A stretch of 63,454 nt of DNA, the filler included, from Octopus bimaculoides (lineage: Eukaryota): the NCBI RefSeq assembly GCF_001194135.2. It is 6 parts of 6 records of this genome, joined end to end, with 100 filler letters (N's around TTAATTAATTAA, not from the genome) between each part and the next. Parts side by side here need not be neighbours in the genome. Positions count along the whole stretch, not along the records: positions 1 to 12,106 come from NC_069000.1; 5 more parts are not named here. The stretch is one strand, 5' to 3'. The translations under genes were made by a program, and so were the position numbers. Positions 1 through 12,106 of this stretch are shown here, piece by piece. The notes under the pieces are model-generated. The model was not told where the DNA came from and did not search any database. It saw only the letters and a program-made list of their open reading frames with translations. Within the stretch, counting starts at the first letter, position 1. The number at the start of each line of letters is the position of its first letter.

Positions 1-30
<30 letters not shown>

Positions 31-34
<4 letters not shown>

Positions 35-180
35 AGAATTCACAAAATAAAACAACAGACGAAGACAGGTGGTGTAGAAAACAAACAGATGTATTATTAT
101 AACGCTCGGGAATTGAAAAAGCGTTTAACGTTTCGAGCCTAAGCTCTTCCACAGAAAGGAACACAGAAAGAAAGAAGGAG
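31..180 (-). repeat. Dispersed repeat with a GAGC-N4-GCTC-GAAACGT hairpin head (partner 49151-49245, +)
   Basis: The reverse complement aligns with 49157-49245 (TCCCGAGCGTT...TAATACATCTGTTTGTTTTCTACACCACCTG). Confidence 0.7.
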
Positions 181-482
181 AGAAAAAAATGTGTGTAATG
201 GTCAGCGATCTATCATTGCGATACATATATATATATATATATATACAACATGGTGCTTTCATTTCCCGTCAACTAAATTCACTCACAAACTTCTGGTCAG
301 CCCTAACTACAGTCATGGACACCTGGTGGACAACATGCCGCGCAGTGAGACTGAACCCGAAACCATGTGACTGGAAAACAAGCTTCTTACCTCATACAGC
401 CATTCCTGTTTGTTTTGTTAGTCATATCATATTTTGTCTGTTGTACCACGATCATAGGATAGCAAGTGTCGATGGAAAATTC

Positions 483-757
483 TATGGAGCCCACAATAAA
501 GGCTTTGAAAGGGAAAAAAAACACTTGAAATTGGATTTAAACTGTGCCATCCTCGACGAGTGTGTCACCTCTTTTTATTTCTGACTAATATGTTCACAAA
601 ATATCCCATTTCTCTCTCCCTCTCCCTCCCTCTCTCTCTCACTCTCTCTATCTCCTCCTCACTCTCTCTCTCTCTCTTTATCTATCGTTATCTCTCTCTC
701 TTTATCTATCTATCTACCTACCTACCTACCTATCTAACTATCTACCTACCTACCTAC

Positions 758-797
<40 letters not shown>

Positions 798-1055
798 ATC
801 TATCTATCTTTATCTCTCTCTCTCTTTCTCTCTTTATCTATCTATCTATCTGTCTATCTGTTTCTTTCTTTGTGTCTTTCTTCTTTACACCCTTCTCACT
901 TTCTCTCTCTCTCTCTCTTTGTGTCTCTATGGAGCCCACAGTAAAGGTTTTGAAAGGAAAAAAAACATTTGAAATTGGATTTAAACTGTGCCATCCTCGA
1001 CGAGTGTGTCACCTTTTTTATTTCTGACTAATACGTTCTCAAAATATCCCATCTC
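483..1055 (+). repeat. About 130-bp direct repeat (483-615 and 927-1055) around a CT/ATCT microsatellite block
   Basis: Both copies read CTATGGAGCCCACA...TGTGCCATCCTCGACGAGTGTGTCACCT...AAAATATCCCAT, with a few substitutions. Confidence 0.85.
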
Positions 1056-1472
1056 TCTCTCTCTCTCTCACTCTCTCTCTCTTCTTCACTCTCTCAATCT
1101 CTTCTTCACTCTCTCTATCTCTTCTTCACTCTCTCTATCTCTTCTTCACTCTCTCTATCTCTTCTTCACTCTCTCTATCTCTTCTTCACTCTCTTTCTCT
1201 TTCTCTATCTGTCTATCTGTTTCTTTCTCTGTGTCTCTCTTCCTCTCTCCCTTCTCTCTCTCTCTCTCTCTCTATCTCTTCTTCACTCTCTCTCTATCTG
1301 TTTCTTTCTCTGTGTCTCTCTTCCTCTCTCCCCTCTCTCCCTTCTCTCTCTCTCTCTATCTTATCTTCACTCTCTCTATCTCTTCTTCACTCTCTCTATC
1401 TCTTCTTCACGCTCTCTCTCTCTTTCTCTATCTGTCTACCTGTTTCTTTCTCTGTGTCTCTCTTTCTCTCTC

Positions 1473-1565
<93 letters not shown>
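1056..1565. repeat. Compound CT-rich tandem repeats (CTCTTCTTCACTCTCTCTAT-type units) ending in a pure (CT)n run
   Basis: Direct inspection. Source of the spurious Leu/Ser ORFs. Confidence 0.9.
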
Positions 1566-1566
<1 letters not shown>

Positions 1567-1734
1567 CACTTCTACTTTTTCTTTGTCTCACTCTTGTCGG
1601 TCTCTCATTATTCACAATCAAACTGTCAGTTTCCTTTCGATATTACTCATCAACAATTTCTATTTTGTTTCTAATTTAAGTAATTTTCGTCCTCATTCCC
1701 GTTTCACTCGACCTCTAGCTCTTCCTATTACGGC

Positions 1735-1825
<91 letters not shown>

Positions 1826-2694
1826 ATGTTTATCTCTATCACTCACTCAAACCAAACCACTCTCTCTTTCACTCAATCCCCTCCTCTCTCATTAGTTCTT
1901 AGTCTTTCTTTTCGACGTATAATTTCTCTCGCGAAACTCGACCCTTTTATTTCCTTGTCTGATGAATCAAACCAGGATATGCAATTACAATCATTCTTTT
2001 TTTCTTCATATTTTTACTCCTGGCCCGTTTGTTCGAATCAAACCCTTCTATGTGTGTGTGTGTGTGTAGATTTATACAATTCTAAATATGCATTTATCGG
2101 ATTCAAATGAAATGATTCTAAACAGTTAAACCTGGATATCGCTATTATCACGTAACTATGAGTTGTCTGTGTTAATTGTTACATATACAACAACTTCACT
2201 TCATAACGTTCACACTTATATTCCTGTCGGTTTTGGATTTGTACATATCTGTTAATTAATTGANNNNNNNNNNNNNNNNNNNNNNNNNNNNNNNNNNNNN
2301 NNNNNNNNNNNNNNNNNNNNNNNNNNNNNNNNNNNNNNNNNNNNNNNNNNNNNNNNNNNNNNNNNNNNNNNNNNNNNNNNNNNNNNNNNNNNNNNNNNNN
2401 NNNNNNNNNNNNNNNNNNNNNNNNNNNNNNNNNNNNNNNNNNNNNNNNNNNNNNNNNNNNNNNNNNNNNNNNNNNNNNNNNNNNNNNNNNNNNNNNNNNN
2501 NNNNNNNNNNNNNNNNNNNNNNNNNNNNNNNNNNNNNNNNNNNNNNNNNNNNNNNNNNCACACTTATATTCCTGTCGGTTTTGGATTTGTACATATCTGT
2601 TAATTAATTGACTTCATTATATCACGAATAAGCTAATTGGTTGCGAAGAATTAATAGAAAGTTCTCAAGCATTTATATTTTATTCGGATCAAAC

Positions 2695-2818
2695 ATGACG
2701 TCTCGTGGTTATATTACTGTTGGTGGAGGGTCGTCTTGGCGTTCTTCAGGTTTGCCTAACAGACTGTTGATGTCGATGATGTTGATGATAATGATTACGT
2801 TTTCTTACACACAAGACT
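2695..2818 (+). CDS. IgSF gene, putative first coding exon (leader/signal peptide): MTSRGYITVGGGSSWRSSGLPNRLLMSMMLMIMITFSYTQD
   Basis: AAACATG start at 2695, hydrophobic stretch LLMSMMLMIMITFSY at the exon end, and a strong phase-1 donor T|GTAAGT at 2818/2819. The phase matches the acceptors of both V-like exons. Confidence 0.65.
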
Positions 2819-2865
2819 GTAAGTGAAAGACAATACATTTATTTTCTCAGCTCTTACCTCTCATC

Positions 2866-2924
<59 letters not shown>

Positions 2925-4189
2925 GTGGACACTGTATTTTGGGGTCCTTAATGTTAGTCGAGTCGATCCCTCTCCAAAAGTGACTCGGCTGATTTCTTCC
3001 AGAAAGGAAGGAGAGACTAATCGATCCAGTACGGGACTGGTATATTATTTATCTACTGCACAAGATAAATCTAAACTCAAAAGGACTTAAATTTAAAGGG
3101 CAGAACTCCATCTCCCCTATTCCCAGAATAAATGCCTCTAAAGACTCCACCAATTCGTAATTCCCATCTCAGGTTAATATATTGTTATATTGTCACCCAG
3201 TAAGTGAGAGATGCGGGGTTCAATTTCTATCACTTAACTTCTACTCCTTGTCCTTTTGCTTTATATATATTTCCATTTTCCTTATTTTACTAAGTTTATT
3301 TTTTTCTTTCCTGTCAACTCACCAACGGTTTCTCTTTGTATATATTGAAGTGAAGATAAGCGTCTGTAGTATGTTTTAGATATTACTTCAACATCTACAA
3401 CGACAATATTTGTTTTATTTTAGTTGTTTCAATTTCAAGTCATCTTTAACTCTCATCGTTCACTAGAATCGCCATTCTTTCATTACGGATTGTGTAACAT
3501 GGTGAACAAAGAAACGAAAGATCTGAGAAATCGAACGCATTTGATAATCGATGACAGCCAGTAATATTTCTGTAATAACGCAAAACTGAACTAAAAGATA
3601 TTTTTTCTATTCTATAATAATCTGTTACAAAATAAGATGAAAGGTCATTTCTGGACTGTTAATGTATTGAAGACTCGGTGTTGTAACTTCGAACTGTGAA
3701 TGCCCTAAATCTAACCCTACATTTTTATGTTTCAAACATCATGATTTATGATAACCAAAAACTGTTTCAATATTTTAATTTTTCACCCATTCTACTATTT
3801 AAAATTTCCTCAAATAAACTTTTCCAAAAGTTCAAATTTTTCTACACCAAATCTGGAAATTTTACGGTTTAAACTTTGTTACTTCCTAGGTTTGTTTTAG
3901 GGGATTTTATTTTGAAAATTTGGCCAATACTACGATTGACCCTAATATAGAATGTCTCAATATGTATTTTGTCTCTTCCTTTTCAATAATGTCACAGCAA
4001 CCCAAACAATCGTGATGTGCGGAAACCTCCGGATTTTATGCAACACCGTTGATCATAATGCATGACACTCACAGATGGCAAACCACACACACTCGCACAC
4101 ACATATATTCGATGCTGGAACGTAAAGTATGATCTTCAGTGAGATGCAGGTGTGGTGTACCTGGAAGAATAAATTTGTCGGTCTCACAT

Positions 4190-5171
4190 ACGACAGTCGA
4201 AGCAAGATGAGGAGGACATTAGTCCAGATGTGTATACAAGAACGGTAACTCTTGGTCTCTAAAATTCAGACAAAATTTCTTTCTTCTTGTTTGCTGTTTG
4301 CTGTAATTAAGATCCCTTTTCTTCCTTCTTTCCCATCATTTTCGGTATTCTCTTCTTTTCCAATTCTTCTTTTCCCTTTTCTTCTTTATCTCCAGCTAAT
4401 CCTTTCTTCTTCTTTTTCTCCATTTATATGTAATTTTCTAATAAATTCTCTCTCTTCCATTTTCATTCCTTTATAGCTATTGAAATGACCAGCCTGACAC
4501 CTGCTGATGGTTTCACAATTGGAGGAGGAAATACAATGAATATTACATGTTCATATAATATGAGAAATTTCCTTAAGTTCAAGGTAGTCAAAAACAACAG
4601 CACCGTTGTAGAGATGCAATACAGCATAAGTAATATGGTCTTTCAAATCGTGCAAACAAGAGGTTTCGATTGTACTTTCCCAGGAACTGGAACATCTGAT
4701 TTGGTTAATTGCTGGAAAAGTAACCTCACTTGCGATGATGTGGCATCATACACATGTTCGACAAACACAGTCACTTCCTCTCCAAAGTCTCTAAAAGGTC
4801 AGTTCACCATCTAAGTCATTGGTTTTCCTTATTCCACATTATTACTTTCAGAATTCAAACCGTTACAAAATTTATTACTATTATTATTATCATTACTATT
4901 ATTGAGTGAGAGAGCAGTGCATGCCATCAAAGTGATACTGGGGTAAAATATACGAACCCCATTATACCCATCATGACTACACGTCTGATAAGGGTACACC
5001 AGGCACATCCATCACAACCATATGTCCGCGACATGGCGATCTCATATCAAGATAAACAGCGCACGACCTCGCAGGTGGGGCTCAGTTAGAATTTTCTTCA
5101 GGTCGAGTAGCCCATCACGCTCAAAAGGTCCCTGAATAAGGTTTGTTTAAGGATCCTCTTCAACATCATCA

Positions 5172-5226
<55 letters not shown>

Positions 5227-5356
5227 CATATAGATTACACCTGCATGTTTCTTACAATCACGAATATCTTCATATAAAACAACGCAGAAATTTTAATGGA
5301 TGGGGTTTTTCTAAGGATGTGGGCAGTACTTGTCAGCACAGTCTTTTGGATTTCTC
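4190..5356 (+). repeat. Segmental duplication, copy 1 (partner about 7456-9035)
   Basis: Homology seen directly: 4190-4871 vs 7456-8158, and 5270-5356 vs 8942-9034. Boundaries approximate. Confidence 0.85.
4477..4797 (+). CDS. IgSF gene, V-like Ig domain exon, copy 1 (321 nt, phase 1-1)
   Basis: Long polypyrimidine tract ending TTATAG| at 4476 and donor AAG|GTCAGT at 4797/4798. The open frame has a B-strand ITC and an F-strand D-x-A-x-Y-x-C motif (CDDVASYTC). Confidence 0.85.
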
Positions 5357-5690
5357 AGGGATATTCCTCACTTGGGATGTTATCTAGATGTTTCTGGCAA
5401 CCCATTTTTATCATACCTAGGGCATGTACAATAATGGAAACAGTTCTCACTTTAAGATGCCGCATCTTTTGTATTTCAATCTCCAAGTCCTTATAATTAC
5501 TTTATTTGTCAAATTCCTTGGCATATATATTTTTATCAGTGGGAACACTTATATCTATAAGTCTACGAGTATATTCTTCCTTGTCTTTAATGACTATGTC
5601 TGGTCGATTAGCCTTGATCGTTCTGTCAGTGTTGGCTTGAAAATCTCAGAGGATAGTGACATTCTTACCTTCAACGACTGGTCCATGATA
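5290..5690 (-). mobile_element. Non-LTR retrotransposon remnant, restriction-like endonuclease C-terminus (R4/Dong-like)
   Basis: Minus-strand translation includes TIL*DFQANTDRTIKANRPDIVIKDK...LIDISVPTDKNIYAKEFDK...YKDLEIEIQKM...ALG, the RPD...D...E-x-x-K pattern of RLE elements. Disrupted. Confidence 0.75.
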
Positions 5691-5912
5691 ATGTCCATAC
5701 CAATAAGAAGGTGTGCTGGTTTTTCGTAATGTTTATATATTTTCCAATACAAAAACTGTCCTACACTGTCGTGTCAATTTTTGTATTCATTTGGTGTCAA
5801 CCCATGACATCCCGAGACGAGAGGTGAACAACATTTTAGGTTTGTATCATCACTATCAATGCATCCATGCAATATATTGTAATGTCATTATTGTTCTCAC
5901 ATTTCTTTTCAG

Positions 5913-6212
5913 TGAAATCTTCTATTAAGAACATGACACGCGTTGACTCTCACTAGGATGGAAACAAGATATCTACATTCAAGTGTACAGCAAATGTTGC
6001 ATTACCATCTACAGCTCCTGTTAAATTTCAATGGAAAATACAACTCGATAATCGTCAAGATCCGATTTATGAAGACAAAGAGGCCATCGTTCCAAATTCT
6101 ACAGAGTGTTATGTTGTAGCTTCTTCACAATATCGGCATAACGATACGTTCGGTGGCCTCGAAAAGATTTCATGTACAGTATTTGGCCAAACATTAGATC
6201 TCTCGTATACAA
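5913..6212 (+). pseudogene. IgSF gene, C2/C-like Ig domain exon (300 nt, phase 1-1) with one in-frame TAG at 5954-5956
   Basis: Acceptor TTTCTTTTCAG| and donor A|GTAAGC. Translation: (V)KSSIKNMTRVDSH*DGNKISTFKCTANVALPSTAPVKFQWKIQLDNRQDPIYEDKEAIVPNSTECYVVASSQYRHNDTFGGLEKISCTVFGQTLDLSYT. It shows the Ig C...W...C spacing. Not in the ORF track. Confidence 0.75.
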
Positions 6213-7234
6213 GTAAGCAAATATTTTTGATCTTGCACTGCTTAATCTATTTATATTTTTTCTTCATATATGGTGAAATTTGTTGTAGGCCTGGTGTTGT
6301 GTTACTAGAAATAGATCGCTGCAGTTTATCTCCTCGTTGACAGAAAACATTGTTGCATTTCTAAATGTTTATGGTTGAGCGGTTAAGTATTGAATGTTTT
6401 TATAAAAGTCTTAACCTCAAACCCAAACAGAAAAATATGTCATAAATTTATGATGGCCCATCCTAACATTACGGCAGACTACTTCTTTCAATAACAATAT
6501 AAATTACTTACAGCTTTTAGCTAATCTCGAAAACAAGTCACGATTTTTTGAGGTCACCCTCCTAGAATTAACAATATTCGTGTGGTTCGTAGGTTTAATG
6601 TTTCTATTCGTAATCTGGCATTTGTTTCTGTGAATATGAAGGCGAAACTCAGCGCCATTAGAATGCACTGCTGCTTTGTTAGTCCGAAAGATGAGGAATG
6701 GTTGATCATTTTATGCAGGAAGATGGAAGATATCAATCGGTGTAGAACAAAGCAAGGAGAATGAATTGGGAGCAAACAAGAAGTACAGACGACAGAAAAT
6801 AATCAGTACATATTCAGAGTTTACATAAGCTTCTCAGTAGGCTTAGCATAGCGATGAACGCCTTATGGCAGTCTTTCATGTAAAACAAAGATCAAGGGAA
6901 AAAAGTACAATAACAGCACGACCACATCCTCTACCTCATTTATCCACAGTACAATGAAATAATGAAAAGAGGCAGTAACAGTAAAGTGTAGTATTATAGC
7001 TAGTGGATATGAGTTCAATTCCTGAGTTAGTCAAGCTTATATAACAGTTCTGGTTAAAGCTTTGTAAACAAGACCAAAATTAATAAAGACCCTAATTAAT
7101 AATGAGAAAATCCCTGATTCATGTGCAAGACAGAACGAGGATGATCTAACTAAATGGTAGGTTACCAGTCTCTTGAAATGTTATTTAATGGGAGAGGTAC
7201 CTGGAGATCTCCAGAGGATACAACAGCTGGAACA

Positions 7235-7455
7235 TTCTTTTCTTTTCTATTCGAGGCACAAGCCCGAAATTTTGGTAGGAGGTGGCCATTCGATTAGATC
7301 GACCTCAGTATGCAACTGGTACTTAATTTATCGACTCCGAAAGTATGAAAAGCAAAGTCGACCTCGGCGGAATTTGAACTGAGAACGTAAAGACGGACGA
7401 AATACCGCTAAGCATTTCGCCCAGCGTGTTAAACTTTCTGCCAGCCCGTCGCCTT
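7235..7455 (-). mobile_element. SINE family B (…TTCTGAGTTCAAATTCCGCCGAGGTCGACTTTG…GGTCGATAAATTAAGTACCAGTT…)
   Basis: Reverse complement of the family seen at 21460-21672. Lies immediately upstream of duplication copy 2. Confidence 0.85.
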
Positions 7456-8165
7456 ACGACAGCCGAAGCATTGCGACTATAATGAGCAAGATGAGGAGGA
7501 AATTAGTCCAGATATGTATACACGAACAGTAACTCTTGGTCTCTGAAATTCAGATAAAATTTGTTTCTTCTTGTTTGCTGTTTGCTGTAATTAAGATCCC
7601 TTTTCTTCCTTCTTTCCCATCATTTTCGGTATTCTCTTCTTTTCCAATTCTTCTTTTCCCTTTTCTTCCTCTTTATCTCCAACTAATCCTTTCTTCTTCT
7701 TTTTCTCCATTTATATGTAATTTTCTAATAAATTATCTCTCTTCCATTTTCATTCCTTTATAGTTATTGAAATGACCAGCCTGACACCTGCTGATGGTTT
7801 CACAATTGGAGGAAGAAATACAATGACTATTACATGTTCATATAATATGATGAATTTCCGTACGTTCAACATCATAAAAAACAACAGCACCGTTGTAGAG
7901 ATTCAAAAGTACGTACCTTATGATATACTTGGAATCATGCAAACCGGACGTTTCGATTGTACATTACAAAGAACTGGAACACCTGGTTTGGTTAAATGTT
8001 CGAAAAGTAACCTCACTTGCTATGATGTGGCATCATACACATGTTCGACAAACACAGTCACTTCCTCTCCAAAGTCTCTAAAAGGTCAGTTCACCATCTA
8101 AGTCATTGGTTTTCCTTATTCCACATTATTACTTTCAGAATTCAAACCGTTACAAAATATATTAC

Positions 8166-8227
<62 letters not shown>

Positions 8228-8743
8228 NNNNNNNNNNNNNNNNNNNNNNNNNNNNNNNNNNNNNNNNNNNNNNNNNNNNNNNNNNNNNNNNNNNNNNNNN
8301 NNNNNNNNNNNNNNNNNNNNNNNNNNNNNNNNNNNNNNNNNNNNNNNNNNNNNNNNNNNNNNNNNNNNNNNNNNNNNNNNNNNNNNNNNNNNNNNNNNNN
8401 NNNNNNNNNNNNNNNNNNNNNNNNNNNNNNNNNNNNNNNNNNNNNNNNNNNNNNNNNNNNNNNNNNNNNNNNNNNNNNNNNNNNNNNNNNNNNNNNNNNN
8501 NNNNNNNNNNNNNNNNNNNNNNNNNNNNNNNNNNNNNNNNNNNNNNNNNNNNNNNNNNNNNNNNNNNNNNNNNNNNNNNNNNNNNNNNNNNNNNNNNNNN
8601 NNNNNNNNNNNNNNNNNNNNNNNNNNNNNNNNNNNNNNNNNNNNNNNNNNNNNNNNNNNNNNNNNNNNNNNNNNNNNNNNNNNNNNNNNNNNNNNNNNNN
8701 NAAAGCATTTTTTTCTTTCATGATCTTTGACAACTACATTATT

Positions 8744-8790
<47 letters not shown>

Positions 8791-9034
8791 TTTTATTATT
8801 ATTATTATTATTATAGATTTAGCCTGCAGTTTCCTTACAATTACTTGCCGAGACACACCCACCATTCTAGGGCGAGTGAAGGATAGGGGACGTTGCAGTG
8901 TCATTGAAAGTTTGGGGAGGGGGAATGTCAGGGACAGTAGCGAATATTTTCATATAAAACAACACAGAAATTTTAATGGATGGGGTTTTTCTAAGGATGT
9001 GGGCAGTACTTGTCAACACAGTCTTTTGGATTTC

Positions 9035-9035
<1 letters not shown>
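7456..9035 (+). repeat. Segmental duplication, copy 2 (includes N gap 8228-8701)
   Basis: Begins right after a SINE tail (ACGACAGCCGAAGCA...) and ends at ...TTGGATTTCT followed by (GT)n. Confidence 0.8.
7764..8084 (+). CDS. IgSF gene, V-like Ig domain exon, copy 2 (321 nt, phase 1-1)
   Basis: Paralog of 4477-4797 with the same length and splice sites (TTATAG|, AAG|GTCAGT). Open frame, all five Cys conserved. Confidence 0.85.
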
Positions 9036-9072
<37 letters not shown>

Positions 9073-10620
9073 TGTGTGTGTGCGTGCGTGCGTGCTGATT
9101 GTTTAGACCGACCTATTTTATGTAGGAATGAATTCGATTTGCAAAAAAATATGTTAAGTAATTCAAAGTCGGTGCTCCAGCATGGCCACTGTCAAATGAG
9201 TGAAACAGATAAAAGAGTAATTCTTAACTATTAGCTTCGATTTAATGAAATCTATCTCAATGACCATATTCTTTAAGCAAAACTTCAAAAAGCAGACTGA
9301 TTTTCAAATGCATTTATCTATAATAATTTTACATTGGTTTACATATAAAATACATATATATATATATAATACAGTCTCTTAATATATTTCCTGTAACAAT
9401 AATGTCTTTTAAGCAATGTTAAATCTCTGAACGAGGTATTAAAATGTTTTTTAACTTTTAAATCAAAACATTTTTGATGTAGTTCTTAACTAATTTTACT
9501 TTTAACTCTTTTATTAACTTAACAAAAGTCCACTTTAACCTGATGAAACTATGTCAACATATTCAGACTGCCTCTATATAATACTGTAACTCCAAATGTG
9601 GAATTGTTGATATTGTATTTCTGCAGTTAGTGGCTAACAGGAGTTATAATTAACAAGCTTGATATCTAAAAATTTATAAGCATCTTGTAAAATCTTGTAC
9701 GGGTGAAAATTCATTTCAATCGCTTGTCGATACCAAATTCAGTAAACGGAAGTATAAATCTGGAAATATAAATAATAAATAAATATATGAGAAATCATTT
9801 GAATGGGGATAAGACAACTAAGTAGTGTCGGTGGGTGGAACCTAAATCTAAGAGGGATAAACAGAACGATAAAAGAAAGATCACAGGAGAACACACCAAC
9901 AGGGGAAGTAACCAACATTTCGACTAGGACGAGACTCGGGTTTGAGAGAAGTAACACCAAAGAATATATAAATATACAGAGATGTATTGATATGTATTTA
10001 GGCTCAATGTAAAACTAGGCCCACGAGGGTATTTTGTGTTGCTGACGATGTGTATAGGCTTCTTGTGTGTTTGTGTGAACTGAGAGACTTGATCGAAGAG
10101 TTTGGTGAATAAACTGGAGTATTCAAGGTTATCAATAGTACTTTGGTTCATCTCCAGTAAGAACAAATTCCAACAAAAGCAAAATGCGAACCAGATGAAC
10201 GGGAGGTGGGTATGTGCGGGTCCTAATATTGTATTCACCGAGATGCACGCGAAATTCCAGTTGTCTCTGATGGTCGTAGCGAGGTAAGGAGTGAAGATTA
10301 TATCTTGCAAATCCAATTTCATTTTTACCTAAGGTGCAATACTAACGCTTACATCGATGTGTTGGTCACAATGGTCAAGCCTTAACTGGACGGGTGCGAC
10401 CAAGAAAACACTTGCATGTATTCTAGCATGACTTTGTTCTCACCCACGTCGTTCTTGGTTCTCGAGCAGCTGTTGATCGTGAAATTTCGTTATCTTTTTT
10501 GCCCTTAGATGAAGTCTCGTAGACTACAGATGCCAAACCAAGACGTTTTCCCCTTTTTAAGATGGATTTTATTGCAGCATTCAACATATATACATACATA
10601 TATGTCTATGTATGTGGGAT

Positions 10621-10957
10621 GACACCCTTCGGTCATGAATGACCCTGGGATTGCACCTAGGAAGTTACCCTCACAGGTACAAGTCCGGACAAGGTTGTTT
10701 GTGGAAGACCAGCAGTCGCCCATGCACACCGGCCTCCCCTCTCTACGCCACCAGTGTTATCCAAGAGAAAGGCAAAGGGGCCGATACAGCTCGGCACCAG
10801 TGACGTCGCAACTCATTTCCACAGCTGAGTTAACTGGAGCAATGTGAAATAAAGTGTCTTACTCAAGGACACAACACCCAGCCTGGTCCGCGAATCGAAC
10901 TCACAACCTCACGATCGTAAGCTCAGCGCTCTAACCACTGAACCACGCGCCTTCACT
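10621..10957 (-). mobile_element. tRNA-derived SINE, family C
   Basis: Reverse-complement homolog of 28321-28660, with a tRNA-like head at the 10957 end. Confidence 0.85.
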
Positions 10958-11099
10958 AAAAGAAAGACCTCGATATTAGGTAAATAGAGGATTATTAATA
11001 TATCTGTAATTTAGGACAAACTGTTTGTCCTAAATTATATAGGGTGACCCTATATGTATGTATGCATGCATGCATGTATGTATGCATGTATTCATTTAT

Positions 11100-11460
11100 A
11101 TCGTTGTCCAGTTTTATTTCGAAATTTCTTACCAATAGAGAAAGAACTGGTTTCTAACCTAGATCCAAGGCTCCTTCATTGGAATTTCAACATCAACAAC
11201 AGGGTATTCTTGTTTGTGTGTATATATGTATGTATGCATGCATGCATGTATGTATGTATGTATGTATGTATGTATGTGTGTGTATGTATGTATTATGTAT
11301 GTATGTATGTGTGTATGTATGTATGTATGTATGTATGCAGATTTGCACATGCACTGTTTTATGTATATATTCTCATGCATATAGCTGCATATCTAGACAT
11401 GCTCATATATATTTAAATGATAAACTTCTGGAAACTTTCACAGAGCTTTTACAGTTCCAG
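11100..11460 (+). repeat. Dispersed repeat with internal (TATG)n; inverted homolog at about 23905-24115
   Basis: Shared TTTCTAACCTA(G)ATCCAAGG.TCCTTCATTGGAATTTCAACA and GCATATCTAGA.ATGCTCATATAT segments. Confidence 0.75.
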
Positions 11461-12106
11461 TGATGGCTTAGGTCTGTAGTCTTCGAATTAGCTTTTTCCT
11501 TTTTGGTTTTGAGGCGCCTAATTTCTCAAGATTGGTATTTAGGCAATATGTTACATATCCCAGGGCCACAATAATTAAAGTTATAAATCTTAACTCGTAA
11601 TCGGGATAGAGTAACTGCAGATTTCTCAATAGTTCGGCGTATGTATGTATTTAATTCAACATGTGAAACTGCTAATCAAGATACGTTTGCTCTCTTACCG
11701 ATTTCTTTTCCTTCTCCATTGATTTCTTTATTCGTTCCTTTTTGCCAAAGAACATAGACATGACACCTTGTTTGTTGTTACCTCTCCTGTCACAGTCTTT
11801 TTTTTCTTCATTTTATTTTTCGTACAATTAAGAAAACTAGGGAGCGGAGACATAAGAAGGGAAATGAAAAATAAAACGAAATAGAAAGTAATTTATTTTT
11901 ACAAACCTTCGTTATCAACTCTGTGCAAAACGGAATGTTGCTAACGAGAAATTGCAACAACCAGAAGCGGAAGAATGAGATTGACAGTTAGAATCCATTT
12001 AGAATACAATATACCAGAACGAGCGCCGCTAGCAACTGTAAGATAAAAAAATGTTTGTGTCAAGGAAAGTGTTTGATCTGAATATTTGAATGAAAATTTA
12101 CGGCCA

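Follow-up and report, generated by a model that had tools for sequence, protein, structure and literature searches.

Mosaic divergence between two V-like immunoglobulin exons in a partly degenerate, Octopus-restricted gene locus

Introduction

In Octopus bimaculoides, two exons of equal length, called here A1 and A2, are nearly identical at their ends and in the adjoining introns, whereas their central part differs at almost one position in four. Both lie in the first part (1–12,106) of the window analysed here, a stretch of 63,454 nt, filler included, joined from six records of the genome; that part corresponds, at 100% identity, to chromosome CM046620.1:43,406,953–43,419,058 of assembly GCA_001194135.2. 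A first-pass annotation of this DNA took the pair for V-like exons with a hypervariable core, and for a candidate diversifying recognition receptor. What history leaves a divergent core between flanks so alike, and is the locus still that of a receptor? We put at about one in two the probability that A1 and A2 are the V exons of two tandem gene copies, that their mosaic of core and flanks arose by segmental exchange, and that the locus is now partly degenerate.

Results

A divergent core between near-identical flanks

A1 and A2 have the same splice context (...tttatag before the exon, gtcagt after it), with the AG and GT dinucleotides intact and the phase-1 frame open. They differ at 43 of 321 nt, without indels, and all five Cys are kept. 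At the codon level, 29 full codons and the split first codon are replacements, and three codons are purely silent. The exon length and all of these counts, already given in the first-pass annotation, were reproduced on recounting. The same was true of its upstream intron of about 225 nt with 5 mismatches and one 3-nt indel, and of its placement of 26 of 29 replacements in residues 27–77 (29–79 in our numbering), where YSISNMVFQ faces KYVPYDILG. Its identical 3' stretch does include 74 nt of intron, but the exon part is 63 nt long, not 61.

The differences are concentrated in a core (exon nt 88–258), with 40 of 171 positions (23.4%), versus 13 of 507 (2.6%) in the flanks (Fisher p=1.2e-15). The shared upstream intron block (4201–4476, 276 nt) has 9 mismatches and one 3-nt indel. 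Uninterrupted identity extends over at most 137 nt (the 63 nt of exon plus the 74 nt of intron), against a permutation mean of 55 (p=0.00015). The most saturated patch is at exon nt 140–169, where 19 of 30 consecutive nucleotides differ, and transversions outnumber transitions by 26 to 17 between the two exons. A frameshift or indel origin of this patch was considered and rejected, since no shifted register restored identity in a gapped alignment (inspected by eye only).

Comparison with the upstream paralogue G1 (LOC106878948) gave different depths for the two kinds of segment. Relative to their distance from G1, A1 and A2 are about 0.15 as far apart in the flanks and about 0.6 as far apart in the core. 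When changes were polarised by G1, nine core changes were unique to A1 and 19 to A2, versus four and four in the 276-nt intron block. Between orthologues, the core evolves about 1.5 times faster than the exon ends, so a constant hotspot fails to explain the roughly ten-fold contrast seen here. Divergence is thus heterogeneous along the pair, silent sites included (see below), and segment depths differ relative to the outgroup; no converted tract was identified.

Silent sites, codon positions and the case for selection

A recent duplication (about 3% divergence), followed by an adaptive burst of amino-acid change limited to the V domain's C-to-E region, is the alternative that survives best, although we consider it unlikely. 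The clustering of 29–30 replacement codons is what would suggest it, together with a frame, splice sites and five Cys that were all retained. The family as a whole points the same way, with V exon ratios of nonsynonymous to synonymous divergence (dN/dS) of 1.2–1.4 between syntenic orthologues and dN above the divergence of flanking introns (p=1e-5). The region that differs between A1 and A2 is also the most variable one in the family (mean column entropy 2.29, versus 1.97 elsewhere).

The pair itself speaks against such a burst. By the Nei-Gojobori method (NG86), the exon as a whole has a dN/dS of 1.54 (one-sided p=0.25) and its core one of 1.23, neither being significant, and the core differences are spread rather evenly over codon positions 1, 2 and 3 (17:10:13). 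Silent divergence is raised as well: NG86 counts 6.7 silent differences on 31 silent sites of the core (proportion of silent sites differing, pS, 0.21), about eight times the flank divergence, whereas none of 38 silent sites differs in the exon ends. In the core, at least six changes must have been silent (codons 60, 66 and 78, and the Val/Ile exchanges at codons 36, 37 and 54), versus 0.8 expected at the flank rate (Poisson p of about 2e-4, by our own arithmetic). Amino-acid selection cannot lift silent divergence and neutral decay cannot outrun introns; therefore, the core has a history that differs from that of its flanks.

Of the two mechanisms put forward earlier, segmental gene conversion or mosaicism thus fits the pair, whereas positive selection is not apparent in it. 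The contrast of 30 replacement to 3 silent codons is correct as a count but overstated as an argument, because replacement sites make up about 78% of the total and codons hit several times mask silent changes.

The location of the changes in the modelled fold, described below, does not single out a recognition face either. The differences are spread over strands C, C', C'' and E and their loops, on both sheets, and hydrophobic-core positions are changed about as often (6 of 14) as other positions (20 of 39). Where the exons differ, A1 mostly holds the family consensus (summed matches across the family, 179 for A1 and 88 for A2). A2 departs from it by Y48K, F55L, G62R, W79S, L32R and P68Q, and the first four of these residues, lost in A2, are nearly fixed in the family. 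A2 also lies outside every annotated product, a further point against an adaptive burst.

A probable origin of A2 in a second gene copy

The features of the locus are as follows.

2695–2818, + strand: exon 1 of LOC106878954, with start codon and a hydrophobic, signal-peptide-like segment; phase 1 end, donor GT at 2819–2820
4201–4476, + strand: last 276 nt of intron 1, common to the A2 copy (96.7%) and to the upstream paralogue G1 (82%)
4477–4797, + strand: exon A1, V-like Ig (immunoglobulin) domain, 321 nt, phase 1/1, within annotated product P0001
4564–4734, + strand: divergent core of A1 (exon nt 88–258, strands C to E), 40 of 171 nt unlike the A2 core
4798–4903, + strand: first ~106 nt of intron 2, identity 96% to the A2 copy, 81% to G1 and 74% to the neighbour G3
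5254–5355, + strand: intron-2 block, last homology before the end of the A2 cassette, 94–97% identical to 8934–9035
5913–6212, + strand: exon B, putative C-like Ig domain, 300 nt, phase 1/1, with an in-frame TAG at 5954–5956
6478–7763, + strand: intron-1-like DNA upstream of A2, homologous to G1 intron 1 in O. bimaculoides and O. vulgaris
7764–8084, + strand: exon A2, second V-like exon, 321 nt, phase 1/1
8085–9035, + strand: intron-2-like DNA after A2, of which blocks 8085–8190 and 8934–9035 match the A1 copy
11944–12045, − strand: hydrophobic C-terminal tail exon of the convergent neighbour G3 (P0020 gene), not part of the + strand gene

The boundary of A1/A2 homology at 4201/7485 is not the edge of a duplication. 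Upstream of A2, positions 7023–7763 are 79% identical to G1 intron 1 of O. bimaculoides over 765 nt, past that boundary, and intron 1 of the O. vulgaris G1 orthologue matches 6478–7060 and 7010–7406. In A1's own intron 1, just the last 276 nt of G1-like intron sequence are retained. On the left, this intron-1-like DNA meets the intron that follows exon B at about 6421–6478, and no signal-peptide exon precedes A2.

On the right, homology to the A1 intron 2 stops at 9035. From 9047 onward (to 18816 when the numbering of the 12,106-nt part is continued along the chromosome), the sequence is orthologous, at 85–88%, to DNA flanking the G3 orthologue of O. vulgaris. Synteny therefore breaks off at a (TG)n microsatellite, no more than about 12 nt from where the A2 cassette ends. 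Because the O. vulgaris orthologues of G1 and G3 are 1.9 Mb apart on one chromosome, a rearrangement breakpoint is placed at 9035–9047. Taken together, the G1-like upstream DNA and the two junctions indicate that A2 was once the V exon of another, second copy of the gene. No orthologue of that copy was found within 7.5–9.5 kb of the O. vulgaris neighbour orthologues, synteny ending at 9047.

The O. vulgaris protein P0009, with its A-B-A order of domains, was examined as an orthologue that would prove an old A1-B-A2 gene, and was rejected because its locus (L007) has no intron homology to the window and its A exons are 27 kb apart.

A damaged locus

The sole product annotated in the 12,106-nt part is 'uncharacterized protein LOC106878954' (P0001, 162 aa). 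It consists of the signal-peptide exon (identical, by tblastn, to P0001 residues 1–41), A1, and 14 codons of a third exon, ending at the TAG at 5954–5956. This third exon really extends over 300 nt; its frame stays open for 85 codons past the TAG and encodes a second Ig-like domain (FKCTANVALP...FQWK...ISCTVF). Where the stop lies, paralogues encode a hydrophobic residue (Leu in P0010), so a TTG to TAG change is likely. A true nonsense mutation, a polymorphic site or a sequencing error may each account for the TAG. Reading of the UAG at 5954 as Trp through A-to-I RNA editing found no support, the equivalent stop in a neighbouring gene being TAA. The copy that carries A1 is thus damaged, with a stop in exon B, and no tail exon for the + strand gene was found in the 12,106-nt part.

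Four family genes are present in 59 kb assembled from three joined loci. G1 (+ strand) has four canonical exons; the gene of the window has a signal-peptide exon, A1, exon B with its TAG, and A2, without a tail exon; the P0020 gene, G3, is on the − strand; and G4 (LOC106878952), also on the − strand, is canonical. Signal-peptide exons homologous to 2695–2818 are present in three neighbouring paralogues. Exon B of G3, located about 1.5 kb beyond the right end of the 12,106-nt part, has an in-frame TAA at its fourth codon (L001 20961–21272, minus strand); the remainder is open, and the tail exon lies downstream. With stops in the B exons of two adjacent family genes, their products would be cut to a signal peptide and a V domain.

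The view of A1 and A2 as two exons of a working receptor is therefore not borne out, given a product ending at a TAG, the missing tail exon, and an A2 that is an unannotated fragment between rearrangement junctions. An exact-protein look-up of the read-through open reading frames (ORFs) of A1 and A2 returned no contig on record, and so no sign of a transcript by this route. A2 is probably not now part of a working receptor.

Could A2, or possibly the whole locus, simply be a decaying pseudogene, in which relaxed constraint and local clustered mutation (multi-nucleotide events, template switching or a hypermutable segment) made the core? The damage just described, the lack of a signal-peptide exon for A2 and its position between two junctions all agree with this, and so do a dN/dS of about 1, the even spread over codon positions, the saturated patch and the transversion excess. 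The changes unique to the A2 core are twice those of A1, conserved framework residues are lost in A2, and the TAA of G3 fits birth-and-death turnover. However, a sequence decaying neutrally cannot outpace the introns next to it, and here the core is some nine times more diverged. Moreover, A1, which is annotated and keeps the consensus, is in excess too, with its nine unique core changes versus about 2.5 expected. No local template for the A2 patch was found in the 59 kb, and frame and Cys were retained. We regard decay as a quite improbable account of the core.

Far less probable is a single gene that uses A1 and A2 as alternative cassettes, mutually exclusive or optional, to make receptor isoforms, as in arthropod Dscam. 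Their equal length and phase and common splice signals would allow it: the near identity of the adjacent intron ends means that the splicing signals are preserved, exon B (phase 1/1) joins A2 in frame, and O. vulgaris has members with repeated A-B units. In contrast to exon arrays, however, a B exon sits between the copies, which are only two. The annotated product ends before A2, no protein in the searched collections contains the A2 sequence except the window's own ORF, and the A2 flanks derive from a separate gene copy.

An assembly artefact, in which two haplotypes or unrelated loci were stitched in tandem, is likewise hardly credible: the short-read scaffold does have N gaps at 2264–2558 and at 8228–8701 (474 N, just past A2), the first bordered by an exact 53-nt duplicate, but 4477–8227 is contiguous without N from A1 through B to 143 nt past A2, A2 is no allele of A1 because its upstream 740 nt (a paralogous intron, at the 79% identity given above) is absent from the A1 intron, and an allelic divergence of 23% over 171 nt within 97% identical flanks would itself be extraordinary. 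The 53-nt direct repeat (2211–2263 and 2559–2611, around the gap of 295 N) looks like a product of scaffolding or gap filling, not biology.

V-like and putative C-like domains

Searches of A1 and A2 against Pfam gave no match even at E values of 10 or less. An AlphaFold2 model of the A domain, built on a 33-sequence family alignment, has a mean predicted local distance difference test score (pLDDT) of 92.2 and a predicted template modelling score (pTM) of 0.84. It is a two-sheet, nine-strand beta sandwich that includes C' and C''; strands are A 2–7, B 19–27, C 33–38, C' 41–49, C'' 54–59, D 63–65, E 73–81 and F 90–95. The placement of the variable region from the B-C loop to the E strand, proposed from the DNA, agrees with these strands. 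Compared with the PDB by Foldseek, all 50 listed matches of the model are VHH, VH or VL domains (TM scores 0.51–0.71, probability 1.00), and an A-domain profile has weak matches to T-cell receptor (TCR) V-alpha (E=0.0036), to CEA and to the V domain of PD-L1.

The residues are in keeping with such a fold. The B-F Cys pair is C24/C93, 69 residues apart, and D87-V-A-S-Y91-T-C93 corresponds to the motif D-x-G/A-x-Y-x-C. D87, Y91 and C93 do not vary among the 33 family sequences, C24 is kept in at least 90% of them, and conservation extends to three more Cys. The strand-C Trp is absent, a conserved Phe (F34) being found instead; the family conserves a single Trp, W79 of strand E, which is part of a 'CWK' motif. 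With the curated Ig profiles of Pfam (V-set, ig, Ig_2, I-set), the best result on paralogues is Ig_2 at E=0.017–0.039, below cut-off. UniProt names some members 'Ig-like' or 'Immunoglobulin subtype domain-containing', which are labels alone. The V-like identity first proposed for the exons is thus supported by the predicted structure, by its antibody-type structural neighbours and by the TCR and PD-L1 profile matches, although curated sequence profiles do not show it.

In the B domain, C24, W40 and C87 are invariant across 19 family sequences. All 50 matches of the B-domain profile are antibody light chains (E 0.28–9, none significant), and the matched residues (about 130–226) would fall in the constant half of the chain. 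An hhalign comparison of the A and B profiles detected no relation between them.

A fast-evolving family restricted to Octopus

An exhaustive HMMER search of 1.84 billion representative proteins, in which relatives were counted as clusters at 50% identity, gave 31 true relatives, all from Octopus. Named members come from O. bimaculoides, O. vulgaris and O. sinensis only, and none has a functional name. An alignment-based homologue search returned three proteins only, with a single addition, a member on a Logan contig (P0033). Literature searches on the LOC identifiers and on octopus expansions of the immunoglobulin superfamily (IgSF) returned nothing relevant and no description of the family. 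The earlier suggestion of a fast-evolving IgSF family is upheld, and the family appears to be undescribed.

A typical member has about 285 aa, with a signal peptide, domains A and B, and a hydrophobic C-terminal tail; a few have a transmembrane tail or (A-B)n arrays. The genes are found in tandem clusters and usually have four exons. Paralogue tail exons end, for example, in ...SSAPAGILYSKWILVVNLILLLVAVAISR, which by eye has the pattern of a glycosylphosphatidylinositol (GPI) signal, and the family tail is probably such a signal. Such arrays occur in O. vulgaris proteins, with five tandem A-B units in P0003 (1202 aa) and three in P0004 (726 aa); the units of P0003 are near-identical and joined by Thr/Pro-rich, mucin-like linkers. 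Internal duplication of units, or gene fusion, is a further way in which the family grows, as these arrays show.

Fast evolution of the exons is seen at several depths. Between A1 and G1, flanking introns are 81–82% identical and the exon 71–72%. Two syntenic orthologue pairs were available between O. bimaculoides and O. vulgaris, G1 with L006 and G3 with L008. Their V-like domains have 52% amino-acid identity in both pairs, so that about half of the residues differ between congeneric orthologues, whereas neighbouring introns are 72–90% identical. The dN/dS is 1.43 for G1 and 1.16 for G3. Pooled over both pairs, the proportion of replacement sites differing (pN) is 0.270, compared with a pS of 0.222 (p=0.18) and a flanking-intron value of 0.167 (pN above intron, p=1e-5). 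Exon B of the G1 pair has a dN/dS of 0.86. With a Cys framework that does not vary, a mean dN/dS of about 1 or more suggests values above 1 at some sites, and the family values are compatible with diversifying selection on some sites.

Other sequence features of the region

The start of the intron that follows the V exon (4798–4890, GTCAGTTCACCATC..., and again 8085–8177) is conserved, with 100% identity to A2, 81% to G1 and 74% to G3. In G3, the first 75–90 nt of this intron are better conserved than the exon, whose DNA can scarcely be aligned. The conserved stretch may act in splicing or regulation. It has no Rfam match, and neither the Rfam nor the tRNA scan of the 12,106-nt part found anything.

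Several repeats are interspersed in the locus. A high-copy repeat resembling a short interspersed nuclear element (SINE) occupies 7241–7456; it belongs to an element of about 165–215 nt with more than 15 copies, at 80–88% identity, in O. vulgaris loci. A SINE-like insert after A1 (4903–5160) is 88% identical to a copy in the O. vulgaris G1-orthologue locus, L006. ARAGORN detected no tRNA-like part in the interspersed repeats. An element of about 1.2 kb at 9241–10483 has several copies in the cluster. Upstream of the gene, more than 1 kb (587–1800) is made of CT/TC-rich and TATC microsatellite or minisatellite arrays, and a 77-nt direct repeat (499–575 and 943–1019) is 91% identical between its copies.

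Discussion

A model for the mosaic

The history that we favour would start from two tandem copies of one Octopus-restricted gene with two Ig domains, laid out as signal peptide, V-like A, C-like B and hydrophobic tail. Rearrangements would then have left a composite locus. Copy 1 would be represented by the signal peptide, A1 and B (ending at the TAG, without a tail exon), and copy 2 by no more than A2 with the adjoining 3' portion of intron 1 and 5' portion of intron 2. The flanks (introns and both exon ends), now 3.3 kb apart, would owe their likeness to a recent shared origin, through duplication or gene conversion. The 171-nt core would have a much older or a foreign ancestry, having either escaped conversion or been patched in from another paralogue. 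Non-reciprocal exchange, that is gene conversion, between tandem paralogues presumably produced the mosaic.

Several points weigh against this history. Homogenisation of the flanks would need to reach all alignable flanks on either side, with about 480 nt of intron in three blocks, and to spare the core alone; conversion that spares the core would therefore require selection, or termination of the tract triggered by mismatches. Two sequences and one outgroup cannot separate an old core from a burst of clustered multi-nucleotide mutation. Neither the cluster (59 kb) nor a set of 15 billion predicted proteins yielded a donor of the A2 core. A2 has kept its frame, splice sites and five Cys, and under 40 random core substitutions retention of frame and Cys has p=0.034, which suggests that most of the core change accrued under framework constraint; judged from its sequence, A2 may formerly have been functional or may still be so. 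Finally, the assembly is a gapped, short-read scaffold.

Comparison with known systems

In major histocompatibility complex (MHC) class I and II genes, antigen-binding exons of old lineage are embedded in introns that recombination has homogenised. The octopus pair is like them in an exon core far more diverged than the introns, with silent sites raised too, and in a mosaic of segmental exchange. It is unlike them in that tandem paralogous exons, not alleles, are involved, dN/dS does not significantly exceed 1, the domain has an Ig V-like fold instead of a groove, the differences extend beyond a binding surface, and one copy is a gene fragment.

Conotoxin superfamilies of cone snails have conserved introns and a conserved signal exon, with a hypervariable mature-toxin exon (PMC3862624). 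The octopus genes resemble them as a molluscan multigene family with conserved introns (exon-adjacent ends included), one fast exon and a conserved Cys framework. In contrast, the octopus products are Ig-fold and probably membrane-anchored, not small secreted venom peptides, and the acceleration between orthologues, about 1.5–2 fold over introns, is less extreme.

Amphioxus VCBPs and snail FREPs also form lineage-specific, tandemly expanded and fast-evolving invertebrate families with V-type Ig domains. VCBPs have two N-terminal V domains and a chitin-binding domain, and FREPs have IgSF domains, a C-terminal fibrinogen domain and somatic diversification. No chitin-binding domain was found in the 10 members scanned or in any family sequence read, and no fibrinogen domain in any of the family members examined (31 representatives). 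Arthropod Dscam1 has tandemly duplicated Ig exons of equal length and phase, like A1 and A2; unlike it, the octopus locus has two copies only, with a B exon between them and the second from a truncated gene copy. The locus is not of the VCBP, FREP or Dscam array type, because defining domain or exon features of each were looked for and are lacking.

In architecture, vertebrate V-C2 proteins (CD2/CD48/CD58/SLAM and B7/PD-L1, some of them GPI-anchored) are similar, with a signal peptide, a V-like and a C-like domain, a short membrane anchor (a probable one in Octopus), and tandem birth and death; the A domain weakly matches the V domain of PD-L1, and the B domain, equally weakly, what would be the light-chain constant region. 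However, the homology is not significant (E 0.001–1), and the octopus V domain has three extra conserved Cys and no C-strand Trp. By analogy, then, MHC exons and conotoxin genes would be the closest in pattern, and small V-C surface proteins the closest in architecture.

What the locus may mean for Octopus

We know of no variable, immune-type receptor family in cephalopods, and most gene expansions specific to octopus have no known function. Through this locus appears an unnamed family of two-Ig-domain proteins, probably membrane-anchored and so far found in Octopus only, with tandem birth-and-death turnover, fusion into domain arrays and, presumably, segmental exchange. The family as a whole is the more interesting lead; the A1/A2 pair is best read as a conversion mosaic rather than as a case of demonstrated adaptive hypervariability.

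A bolder proposal, which we think has little chance of being right, is that the A/B genes form an Octopus-specific repertoire of V-C surface receptors, whose V diversity is kept by selection and by germline exchange of cores between tandem copies. If it were true, the family would be the cephalopod equivalent of variable recognition families, whether immune, allorecognition, gamete or chemotactile, the A1/A2 mosaic would be a snapshot of that exchange, and orphan exons such as A2 would be donor cassettes. Should expression and polymorphism show selection for diversity, a new invertebrate recognition system would be at hand. Otherwise, the locus would be a clear illustration that a 'hypervariable exon' can be simulated by gene conversion among young duplicates, and that counts of replacement and silent codons, taken alone, mislead.

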